Assembly: GCF_947568905.1 (NCBI RefSeq)
Contig: NC_079169.1
Location: 92,442,001-92,506,000 of the forward strand
Length of the DNA: 64,000 nucleotides
From: Ostrea edulis
Lineage: Eukaryota
Reading direction: 5' to 3'
Shown: positions 41,155 through 50,741 of the stretch, piece after piece
How positions within the stretch are numbered: position 1 is the first letter of the stretch
Layout: each line of letters starts with the position of its first letter
The notes under the pieces: model-generated
Databases searched by the model: none
What the model was told of the DNA's origin: nothing
Seen by the model: only the letters and a program-made list of their open reading frames with translations
Translations under genes and position numbers: made by a program

Positions 41155-44100
41155 TCAGTTATGTCGTCTGCCACGTTGAGACCTTTCCTCAAATAAGGAG
41201 GTGGTGTAACGCTCCTCGCAAGTTACCAGTGCCTTGTACAGAGTAACCAAATTTTCATTTTTAAGTGACCTGGCCATGAGTTTCCACAGCTCGTACATAT
41301 CACCAGACAGACAATGCGTCCCGCGTGCAGCTCTCGTCTGCTGCAGACACTCGTCGGTACACGTCGCTGATTGCGCACATTTTGCCATGTCGTATAGAGG
41401 ATTAGAAACTAAAGCTTTCATGAACCCGGTGTATGTACACCCAAATACAGATTCACCTATTTCTAGGGCACAGAGTGGTATGTTTTTAAAGCTTTCACAG
41501 TGATGGTCGTCCCAATTTTCTTTCGGGTAATAGATGAGAATGGTTTTACACAATTCCTGATTGGGCCCCATTCCCCAGGTGACTGCATTACGTTCATTCA
41601 TGGTGTTGTATTCGCAGGTCAGTTTCAACATATCCCCAGGCAAAACTGGCACAGGTGTGGTGTACCTAATGAAAATTGAGAAATGCATATCGATATTAAA
41701 TTATTAGCATATATATGTAGATAGATATTCCATTATTTATTATAATGAAAGTCTTGTTGCCCTTTCGGCCACTTACCAGAAAACAGTTGGGTCTAAGACG
41801 TTGTAGTGGGTGTCTTTTGTAATAGAATTGTAGATCCGGTTATTTCTTTCAACATCAACCTGCTGCTTAACTCCTGCAAGAAATCCAAGTGCCAGTGATT
41901 TTATAATTATATTTAAATTACGGGAGAAAGGAGTCACATGCGTTCCCCCCAAGCTTGCGGTGTTCAGCGCATGTGCAGACAAAAACTCTCCGGGAACGAA
42001 GAAAGTGTAAGAGAAATAGAAAGTGTAATGCGGACCAGGGATCTGAAATTATCTCTCCGCCTTTGATTTCGAGGCTCAGACTTTTCCAATATAAAAACTG
42101 AGAATAAGATCAAAATTGACTTCATATCAGAATTATGGCCGCGGAGTCGGACCGGAATTCAGACCATTGAAATGTACCAATAGAGCTATACATGTTGTCA
42201 CTTGTAATTAAACCCCTCATTGTTGCAGTCACCATTTCCCCTTCGCATGTACCTGAAACATCGGCCTAAAAATCTATGGTTTTCACTCTGGACTCATACA
42301 GTGAGATGAGAACTGCAGTGAATATAAAGTAATTCTAACTTTTATGTAGAATAACGTAGAATGAACATAAAAACCGCGTGTTTAAAACTTTTAATGGATT
42401 AAGGCAGAGTGCCGTGTAGATAACATGGAATGGAATGTACACAATACTTTATACAATGTACATGTAGCAAATATGAAACTGATGTCTGGAATGGTACCTT
42501 TACTAAATCTAGTATCCATTTATGACTGACTGACACGCCAATGAGCGTCCTCCTCTATAAATATACATGTAGCTACTGTAAATCTCTGTTCACAGAACTT
42601 TATCTTTGCGATCTTGCCTTGATCAGCGAAAATATTCTATTTCGCTAAAATTATCATTTATGAATTGCACACTGGAAACGATTTTCAACAACCTTATTTT
42701 CGCGATTTACGCTAAAATAAAGTTCTCACGGGAAAAAATGTTGTTGGATACCGGCGGTTGGTCTCGTCTTTTACTCATGATAAATAGAAGACATTAGCTG
42801 TGGGTATCCTACGATGGGTTAAAATGTGGTACCATCTCCGTAGCGAATACAGCTGGACATGTCATCACTGGTGATGTCGATATACATGTATTATATAAAT
42901 TTACTGCACAAATTTAGTAGTGGGGATCCAGCAAAATTATGATATACAAGTATAATCTGTTTGTTTTCTGTAAGTGTTTGAAAAGTTCCACTCCCAAGAT
43001 TACATCCTGTACTTTGATTAGGGAATACTTATATATCAGCTTTTGTTGATATTTTTTCGGAGAGCATACTGGATGCATGATTTATCTTTAGTGCACTTTT
43101 TTGCTTCATCTTTTAAGGATGTACTCGACATCGTCATGATGGCAGACTTCCTTTTAAAACGGATAAAAATATAAATATCGGCAATATTTGTCTATTCATT
43201 TAAAAAGTTCTTGCCTAGCTGCATGAGTAGGTCAGTAGGTTAGCACGTCGACTGCTGAACTGTAGATCGCGGGTTCGAGTCCATTAGGGGTTTTAAATTT
43301 TTCTCAGATTGCTTTCAACTAAAACTGCATTTTTTGACTAAATAAAGTAAATTTGAAAGTTTTCAATTTCAATTATTATTGTACATATCCTCCACTTTTC
43401 ATCCATGTCAAATGTCTCAGGTGCAGCATACCTTCTTAATATATGACTATTTTAATCTAGACGATGCAGCATTGAATTAACAAACACATTGTGTGGTCGG
43501 TTGTTTGAATTTAGAGTATTCTTCCGAAAATAGATCTATATAACCCGTTCTACTGCTAATGATAGTGAATATGCATTTCACAGTAAACACGTAAGCAAAA
43601 GTTTTTGGATTTAATTCATATAGAATATACACGTCTAAATGATTACGTATACTTGTGGCCTTACTACTCATCGAATTAAGAGTAGTGTTGGGGATGACGA
43701 CGATGATGAAGATTTATAGAGCAGACTGCCCAGTAGGGGTCCTACTACACTTGGTTCATTGCAGCGAGGTGCCGATGGTGGTCGACCCTGGGAACGGGGA
43801 CTAGTGTTGAGGGGGGGGGGGGGGGGGGGGGGGGTGTCTCATTCGGTCTCTTATATAGTGATTGCTAGACTAGGTTTCATGCGCATGTGCGAGATAAAAA
43901 CCCATTTAGTTATAAATGGACAATGTATGAGTAGCGTAGGAGGGATCTCATTCTATCGGTATAGTGGTTGTCAGATCTGAGCATGCGCAAGATACAACCC
44001 ATTTAGTAATGAATGTACATAGCATGACGTATGACAATCTAATAGCATTTATCCATAGCTGGTTACCAAAATGTCTCATGACGTTGACTCCCGCCACGAT

Positions 44101-50100: not shown

Positions 50101-50741
50101 TTTTTTTTTTTTTCGGGATCATTAATTACTATCAAGTTGTTGCTTGTTGATCGTATAGACAGTAACCACGATAGGAATTAGACGACTTGGTTTGAAGATG
50201 GTCATGGTTGTCTTCAGATTTACATACGTGTTGTGTAGATTGACCCTTTGTGGGAGTTACTGACCGATGGCATGTGTCAGTGTGACACACGTGTGCTTAT
50301 GACACAAGGCAATGACCGTGTGTAGTTTCCTTACATCCAAAGAAAAGGGTGGGTTTTTTTGCGTTGTACCATGTGTAATTATCTAAAAAGCCTCTGCCTA
50401 ATTAGTAACTGGCCGTGGTTGTCGCATATTTTATTACATACATTTAATTGCTACATCTTTATTACATTCATATATATTTAAATCCTAGAAGAATAATTAC
50501 TTTCATTAAATTGCTACACCTGAAACGATATGCTTACCTTGTTGAAATTCATAAAATCATGTCCGAACTGATTCCTGGGTCCCGATCCATGGGGGCCAAG
50601 ATGCCCCACCCCGTTCCACACCAAGGAGGGGTTACACGGGTTTGGGACCGTGTCCCCGTTCGGTATGTGGTCATTAAATGAGGGCCATCCCAGTGTGGTC
50701 GCCACAAGACCAAAACCTATCAGACACAGCACGCGCATCAT
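41155..50741 (-). CDS. Secreted temptin-domain + copper type II monooxygenase-fold (DBH/MOXD1-like) protein, 545 aa, predicted non-catalytic
   Basis: Exons 50741-50538, 49546-49417, 45299-45195, 45111-44941, 44786-44608, 44307-44067, 41873-41777 and 41665-41155; all GT-AG, 1638 nt, no internal stop. Signal peptide; temptin motifs IPNGDTVPNPC..WNGVGH, GPRNQFGHDF and CRLDSDGDGRYNGLELGDPNCLW; monooxygenase motifs VLPGDMLKLTCEYNT and IYYP. Confidence 0.85.
43117..43435. mobile_element. TTAA-flanked (Kolobok-like) small element containing a tRNA-like segment
   Basis: ttaa|ggatgtactcgac ... gcagcataccttc|ttaa; internal gtaggtcagtaggttagcac...GGTTCGAGTCC. Confidence 0.35.
45632..45830 (-). mobile_element. 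PLE 3' UTR fragment
   Basis: gaaaggtgaagataacgaacag...gaggtgggatcaggtgtctaggaggagtaagcat. Confidence 0.75.
46615..49417 (-). repeat. Compound tandem-array family (sub-arrays of ~46, 41, 25 and 41-45 bp) related to the monooxygenase exon-2 end plus donor
   Basis: The shared minus-strand core ttctcac..cag|G(T/A)AA(A/G)TCAC resembles the real junction ttctcgcacccag|GTAAAAGTC at 49417. Confidence 0.85.
47590..47922 (-). mobile_element. tRNA-derived SINE inserted in the array
   Basis: tttgtttgtt tail, ttcactcatattgagacgtcacc, cgtttggcgaaggagca, ggactcgaactc (B-box reverse complement), ccactgagctacc. Confidence 0.8.

Follow-up and report, generated by a model that had tools for sequence, protein, structure and literature searches.

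Here we describe a gene of the oyster Ostrea edulis that lies on the minus strand and fills positions 41155-50741 of a 64,000-nucleotide stretch of DNA (NCBI RefSeq assembly GCF_947568905.1, contig NC_079169.1, positions 92,442,001 to 92,506,000; hereafter the window, whose own numbering is used throughout). We consider it highly probable that the gene is intact, transcribed and maintained by selection, and that it encodes a conserved, secreted pseudoenzyme of the DBH/PHM fold. Two-copper catalysis is the textbook property of DBH, PHM and their relatives, and it is at the ligands of both coppers that the oyster protein departs from them.

A HMMER search with the last exon of the gene against 1.84 billion representatives returned 213 relatives, and the ligand columns were read from a MAFFT alignment of 57 sequences, made up of the spliced oyster protein and 56 relatives that span both copper domains. 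About 40 of these 56 relatives read His, His, His, His, His and Met at six columns, which correspond in PHM and DBH to the CuH ligands (H107, H108 and H172 in PHM numbering) and the CuM ligands (H242, H244 and M314). At the same columns the oyster protein reads K196, K197, T265, V339, R341 and L414 (KKTVRL, a shorthand applied to other proteins below); that is, the His-His-His of CuH has become Lys-Lys-Thr and the His-His-Met of CuM has become Val-Arg-Leu. In a HMMER pairwise alignment with human DBH (4zel), KK likewise stands opposite HH, T opposite the His of HYHNP, and QELC opposite EEMC. An initial annotation of the window, made from the nucleotide sequence, had proposed substitution at all six ligands, and the family alignment bears this out in placing no His or Met at the ligand columns; its exon and motif coordinates were also correct, with the ligand codons lying where it had put them. 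The oyster protein thus appears, as judged from its residues, not to bind catalytic copper. With both copper sites gone, no two-copper, ascorbate-dependent hydroxylation of the kind carried out by its relatives is therefore to be expected, and although by homology the protein is a member of the copper type II monooxygenase superfamily, the failure of both defining active-site features means that classifying it among the DBH, TBH or MOXD1 enzymes, as has been done for its orthologs, would be wrong. This matters in practice, as genome annotations name every homolog a hydroxylase ('MOXD1 homolog', 'dopamine beta-hydroxylase-like') and these are often counted into the catecholamine pathway; for the lineage described below, such counts can include proteins unable to be enzymes.

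Sequence reading and scripted assembly gave eight exons (Table 1) with a GT donor and an AG acceptor at every intron, which join into 1638 nt encoding 545 amino acids with no internal stop. The signal peptide, judged from the sequence, consists of MMR, a hydrophobic stretch of 13 residues (mean Kyte-Doolittle value 2.25) and the cleavage context TLG|W, and the protein, of approximately 59 kDa with three N-glycosylation sequons, is probably secreted. Searches of the individual exons with Pfam assigned exon 1 to Temptin_C, exon 4 to Cu2_monooxygen and exon 8 to Cu2_monoox_C. In the assembled protein the temptin domain (PF24784) spans residues 18-113 and is followed, in the same chain, by about 430 amino acids of monooxygenase-like core. 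The Saccostrea cucullata ortholog introduced below (P0151) scores 112 bits for Temptin_C (gathering cutoff 27), 47.6 bits for PF01082 (30) and 48.1 bits for PF03712 (23). Pfam found no DOMON domain in either the oyster protein or P0151, the temptin domain standing in its place. The mature protein contains 24 cysteines, as did all relatives checked, whether their ligands were intact or not. In a 41-sequence alignment seven cysteine columns are invariant, and all of them are present in the oyster protein (C169, C203, C218, C226, C243, C393 and C415); the columns of the temptin loop are near-invariant in the same alignment. The eight exons, the 545-residue open reading frame, the signal peptide, the temptin domain and the retained cysteines of the initial annotation all agree with the assembled coding sequence, the Pfam matches and the cysteine count.

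The gene is transcribed and correctly spliced. In sequencing runs X1 and X2 the contigs lie on exons only, at a k-mer depth of approximately 430-830, and five contig joins skip introns 3-7 (Table 1). All five have CT..AC ends, equivalent to GT..AG on the minus strand, and their small cut offsets resolve to the predicted exon borders, while a loose contig end runs on into the 3' end of exon 2. Since intron removal is exact in these contigs we regard them as spliced transcript. Runs X7 and X8, on the other hand, cover the introns at a depth of 2-8 and are for that reason taken to be DNA. Comparison of the RNA contigs with the genomic sequence lists 13 differences in exons; 9 of them are synonymous and none falls at a ligand codon (binomial P = 0.0004 for so few non-synonymous changes), and the RNA-contig coverage of exon 4 shows no change at the two Lys codons. 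A complete Magallana ortholog was also found on an intron-less Logan contig of 1705 nt.

Although the oyster protein itself was not found in the protein collection searched, its orthologs were. The closest is P0151 from S. cucullata ('MOXD1 homolog 1-like'), with 82.5% identity over 543 amino acids, followed by the Magallana angulata cluster (P0152/P0164) with 77.5% identity; the accession of the Magallana ortholog is XP_052688704.1. The S. cucullata ortholog as annotated by NCBI has the same eight exon lengths save for 3 nt in the last exon, and its neighbors are those of the O. edulis gene: one flank carries a TFIIH p62-like gene, the opposite flank EGF_CA and MFS genes. The gene is the positional ortholog of the Saccostrea and Magallana 'MOXD1 homolog 1-like' genes. 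For the three oyster pairs, the Nei-Gojobori method (NG86) gave approximate ratios of non-synonymous to synonymous substitution (dN/dS, or omega) of 0.081, 0.077 and 0.059, with dS of 1.3-2.5 and dN of 0.11-0.16. Given dN of 0.11-0.16 against dS above 1.3, purifying selection on the gene is beyond doubt, and by region the lowest ratio (about 0.05) was that of the former catalytic C domain.

The loss of ligands extends well beyond O. edulis. In a maximum-likelihood tree of 42 rows (IQ-TREE quick search, LG+C20) the protein falls within a nine-protein bivalve clade, supported by a Shimodaira-Hasegawa-like approximate likelihood ratio test (SH-aLRT) value of 99, and all nine members are ligand-degenerate; its own subclade is supported at 99, and the grouping of oysters with Pinctada at 100. 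According to the MAFFT columns the Saccostrea ortholog reads KKTVRL as in O. edulis, the five members of the Magallana cluster read GQTIGL, and Pinctada imbricata P0003 reads GGIINV, with partial loss in Mytilus edulis P0153 (HGQHHM) and in the scallop Mizuhopecten P0004 (HHLQHI). The other subclade contains Tegillarca P0012 (SAHQNL), Mytilus P0016 (DQRHHM) and Pinctada P0181/P0013 (GGRHHI). A fourth oyster fragment (cluster P0001) has Ile at the Met column. No replacement is shared by all nine proteins at any ligand; the residues differ from lineage to lineage and vary even within oysters (KK versus GQ, R versus G, V versus I). Lineage-specific replacements combined with strong purifying selection elsewhere in the protein suggest that the metal sites were released from constraint at an early point in this pteriomorphian clade. 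The need for copper would then have ended near the base of the nine-protein clade, with the ligand columns drifting independently thereafter and constraint persisting over the remainder of the protein, and the DBH/PHM fold may have been kept for a non-catalytic extracellular job.

Elsewhere in the temptin-monooxygenase family ligands have degenerated independently. Two Sinanodonta woodiana proteins from neighboring genes, with consecutive GenBank accessions (P0049 and P0030), read HHYYHI and NQHRHL, a metagenomic protein (P0102) reads HTRLRK, and in several gastropod and scallop proteins (P0084, P0157, P0222 and P0215) the third CuH His alone is missing. A cluster of 134-residue proteins from Logan contigs (P0002) was considered as a divergent paralog and rejected, since it looks like the Magallana gene assembled into contigs from bisulfite-converted reads: compared with the Magallana ortholog it shows systematic changes of Pro to Leu or Phe, His to Tyr and Thr to Ile, and it is probably no true paralog.

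In the predicted structure of the ortholog (mean predicted local distance difference test score 87.7, predicted template modeling score 0.73) beta-rich domains occupy residues 149-435 and helices residues 454-540. In the PDB, Foldseek matched this model strongly to human DBH (E = 5e-25), to about thirty PHM entries and to nothing else, the PHM entries having target TM scores of 0.73-0.81 and root-mean-square deviations of 3.1-4.1 Å over approximately 300 columns. The model thus matches DBH and PHM overall at the level of the fold, the ortholog standing in for the O. edulis protein, and it indicates that the fold of the catalytic core is kept. The likeness to DBH and PHM comprises a homologous two-domain beta-sandwich core (PF01082 and PF03712), the conserved core cysteines and, as predicted for the oyster protein, the secretory pathway. 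In contrast, DBH and PHM have six copper ligands that are all replaced in the oyster protein, for which their known reaction is not expected, and DBH and MOXD1 carry an N-terminal DOMON domain where the oyster protein has Temptin_C.

This substitution of temptin for DOMON is common among molluscan members of the family with intact ligands. Such proteins, including the Aplysia californica 'dopamine beta hydroxylase-like protein precursor' (P0156) and the 'tyramine beta-hydroxylase-like' proteins of Mytilus and Biomphalaria, read HHHHHM and are presumably active. They share with the oyster protein the succession of Temptin_C, Cu2_monooxygen and Cu2_monoox_C followed by a Cys-rich tail, as well as 24 cysteines, at 28-33% identity. 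Aplysia temptin is a component of a water-borne pheromone; it has Temptin_C, the Asp/Gly-rich loop and the cysteines in common with the oyster protein, but is a small stand-alone protein, whereas the oyster temptin domain is the N-terminal module of a 545-residue fusion. The retention of a metal-enzyme fold after loss of the metal is a well-known general phenomenon. In arthropods, hexamerins and pseudo-haemocyanins preserve a copper fold without the metal-binding histidines and are kept as abundant, secreted, non-catalytic proteins; theirs is a type 3 copper fold from another phylum, and the comparison with the oyster protein is one of analogy and not of kinship.

What, then, might the protein do? 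Its closest characterized relative is P-U1 (AKV63176.1; P0013 in our set). Mass spectrometry has detected P-U1 in the prismatic layer of the Pinctada fucata shell, in a study whose listing describes it by nothing more than its Cu2_monooxygen domain (PMC4660305). A full-length relative, P0181, is present in P. imbricata. P-U1 belongs to the same family and to the same degenerate clade (SH-aLRT 99) as the oyster protein. It differs in that its GGRHHI pattern has lost the CuH site and the CuM Met and kept both CuM histidines, whereas the oyster protein has lost all six ligands, and in that it lies in the paralogous subclade, with approximately 36% identity to P0151. Because the sister subclade holds P-U1, a matrix role gains indirect support, and our preferred reading, which we hold tentatively and somewhat below an even chance, is that the oyster protein would act in binding or as a scaffold within the extrapallial or shell organic matrix, in the manner of P-U1. 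A weaker and unspecific hint is that genes labelled 'temptin' and 'DBH-like' have been listed among oyster mantle and shell-formation genes, none of them tied to this ortholog (PMC11464482, PMC5824581, PMC13664851), and the mantle 'DBH-like' gene of M. gigas (LOC105321753) could not be mapped to it. Other DBH-like paralogs of bivalves have been reported from larval gut, in mussels, and from digestive gland, for which reason a role outside the shell is quite possible; secreted binding roles in mucus, gut or haemolymph share what probability the matrix reading leaves with the pairing to active paralogs discussed below.

Several points weigh against these interpretations. First, the HMMER pairwise alignment with DBH inserts one gap at the HxH motif, which sets the second CuM His against H342. 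In the family alignment, which has no gap here and is anchored by N, M and G-x-K, the HxH ligand positions are occupied by V and R, and the gapped register would rescue at most one of the six ligands; we therefore rejected H342 as a surviving CuM ligand, as it is obtained in the gapped pairwise alignment only, is absent in Pinctada, and would be left without the other five. Second, dS is saturated between the oysters, rendering the omega values approximate. Third, the AlphaFold model was made on the S. cucullata ortholog (82.5% identical, with the same residues at the six columns) from the 41-sequence alignment. Fourth, the RNA label of X1 and X2 is a guess of the tool used, and the two runs come from one study whose organism code differs from that of the DNA runs, with a divergence of about 1%. 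Fifth, the shell connection rests on a paralogous subclade in another bivalve family together with loosely annotated mantle genes. Finally, a different chemistry at another site is possible. The reading of the initial annotation, a candidate pseudoenzyme, nevertheless stands: alignment, transcription, dN/dS (0.06-0.08 against the two oyster orthologs, far from 1) and shared loss (common to Saccostrea, Magallana and Pinctada) were all tested and none refuted it.

An alternative to the matrix reading, possible though on balance unlikely, is that the protein acts as a carrier or sensor whose old cleft binds an amine (tyramine- or dopamine-like), a peptide C-terminus or a DOPA-rich matrix protein without turnover, the temptin domain providing protein or calcium-dependent contacts of the sort proposed for the Aplysia pheromone temptin. 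That the C domain is the most constrained region (omega about 0.05), that the fold is kept and that the DSDGDG..ELGDP loop is near-invariant are all consistent with this; the residues at the ligand columns vary among oysters, however, which means that the metal pockets form no conserved new binding site. In a broader scenario, which we regard as doubtful to a similar degree, the clade would have given up copper catalysis early and been recruited as extracellular matrix or binding proteins, with the P-U1 branch in the shell and the other branch losing all ligands in oysters and pearl oysters; the old cleft and the calcium-loop-like temptin module would then do the binding when shell or mucus is formed. 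If true, the type II copper monooxygenase family would thereby gain its first documented pseudoenzyme lineage, one with a defined biological role.

Many pseudoenzymes regulate active relatives, and the oyster protein could in the same manner serve active paralogs as a partner, whether regulatory or structural, entering mixed oligomers through its helical Cys-rich C-terminal domain, as in DBH dimers and tetramers, and modulating or localizing their activity. The C-terminal domain (residues ~440-540) with its near-invariant C472, C482, C494 and C525 is indeed common to the intact paralogs, of which bivalves have many. No active paralog lies within the 64-kb window, though, and ligand loss throughout a clade that has a member embedded in shell is explained no less well by an independent role; we judge such a partnership improbable. 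Still less probable is that the protein remains an enzyme without canonical copper sites, either with other residues holding a single metal or with a non-redox activity. Strong purifying selection on the core and the presence of histidines near the old sites (H189-H191 and H342) speak for it. We considered the upstream His run (NHHH) as a displaced CuH site and rejected it, since this run is not conserved, reading NHQH in Saccostrea and NYQH in Magallana; H342 is absent in Pinctada, and no replacement residue is conserved across the clade. Moreover, single ligand mutants of PHM lose CuH according to the titles of their PDB entries (H107A, 6alv; H172A, 6amp). Lastly, the notion that a recently inactivated gene is turning into a pseudogene, its frame open by chance, accounts for the loss of all catalytic ligands but is negligible in view of 545 open codons, the same loss in orthologs at dS above 1.3 and omega of 0.06-0.08, conserved exon structure and synteny, and spliced transcripts at high depth.

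We found no description of ligand loss in this enzyme family or in these genes in the open-access literature searched, whose coverage is incomplete. The graded loss of copper sites in the clade, from intact through CuH lost to both lost, amounts to a natural experiment on the other uses of this fold, and for biomineralization it offers a lead by tying the uncharacterized P-U1 to a defined evolutionary story.

Table 1. Exons of the O. edulis gene in window coordinates, with the domains, ligand codons and RNA-contig junctions assigned to each.
Feature	Position	Strand	Length (nt)	Content and support
Exon 1	50538..50741	-	204	Start codon, signal peptide (residues 1-18) and first half of Temptin_C (Pfam 50.7 bits); GT donor
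Exon 2	49417..49546	-	130	Second half of temptin domain, including the near-invariant DSDGDG..NG.ELGDP loop; RNA-contig loose end 45302 reaches its 3' end
Exon 3	45195..45299	-	105	Cys-rich linker from temptin domain to monooxygenase N domain; junction 45110/45194 (cut +1) in X1 and X2
Exon 4	44941..45111	-	171	Start of Cu2_monooxygen N domain; CuH His-His replaced by K196, K197 (codons 44965-44960); PF01082 27.4 bits for the exon alone
Exon 5	44608..44786	-	179	Middle of N domain, conserved cysteines; junctions 44785/44941 and 44307/44608 in X1 and X2
Exon 6	44067..44307	-	241	End of N domain and start of C domain; T265 (44304-44302), V339 (44082-44080), R341 (44076-44074)
Exon 7	41777..41873	-	97	Strands of C domain; junctions 41872/44066 (cut +1) and 41662/41774 (cut +3) in RNA contigs
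Exon 8	41155..41665	-	511	Rest of Cu2_monoox_C (PF03712 39.9 bits), L414 (41553-41551), Cys-rich helical C-terminal domain (residues ~440-540), stop codon

The window contains no runs of N, and tblastn with the gene model and five relatives as queries found no second copy of the gene in it. Downstream of the gene lies the TFIIH p62-like neighbor (PH_TFIIH/BSD, ~31000-37400), and upstream are the EGF_CA and MFS_1 transporter genes (~52070-53140 and ~59000-60100). At exon 2 the donor motif cacccaggtaaaag is duplicated 29 nt downstream (49380-49420). This second copy, at 49388, was considered as an alternative donor. It would be out of phase with exon 3, and the RNA contig supports 49417 and leaves it unused; we rejected it for these reasons.

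The introns hold a number of repeats. Three minisatellites are found in intron 2, at 46815-47215 (41-nt units, 9.9 copies), 47263-47571 (25-nt units, 12.4 copies, 99% matches) and 48103-49223 (45/86-nt units, 24 copies), and these arrays yield long spurious open reading frames on both strands. In intron 6, where ARAGORN detected no tRNA or tRNA-derived element, a dispersed repeat at approximately 43116-43547 reaches k-mer depths in the thousands in all four runs, RNA-like and DNA, and is followed by a long poly-C tract at 43800-43844.

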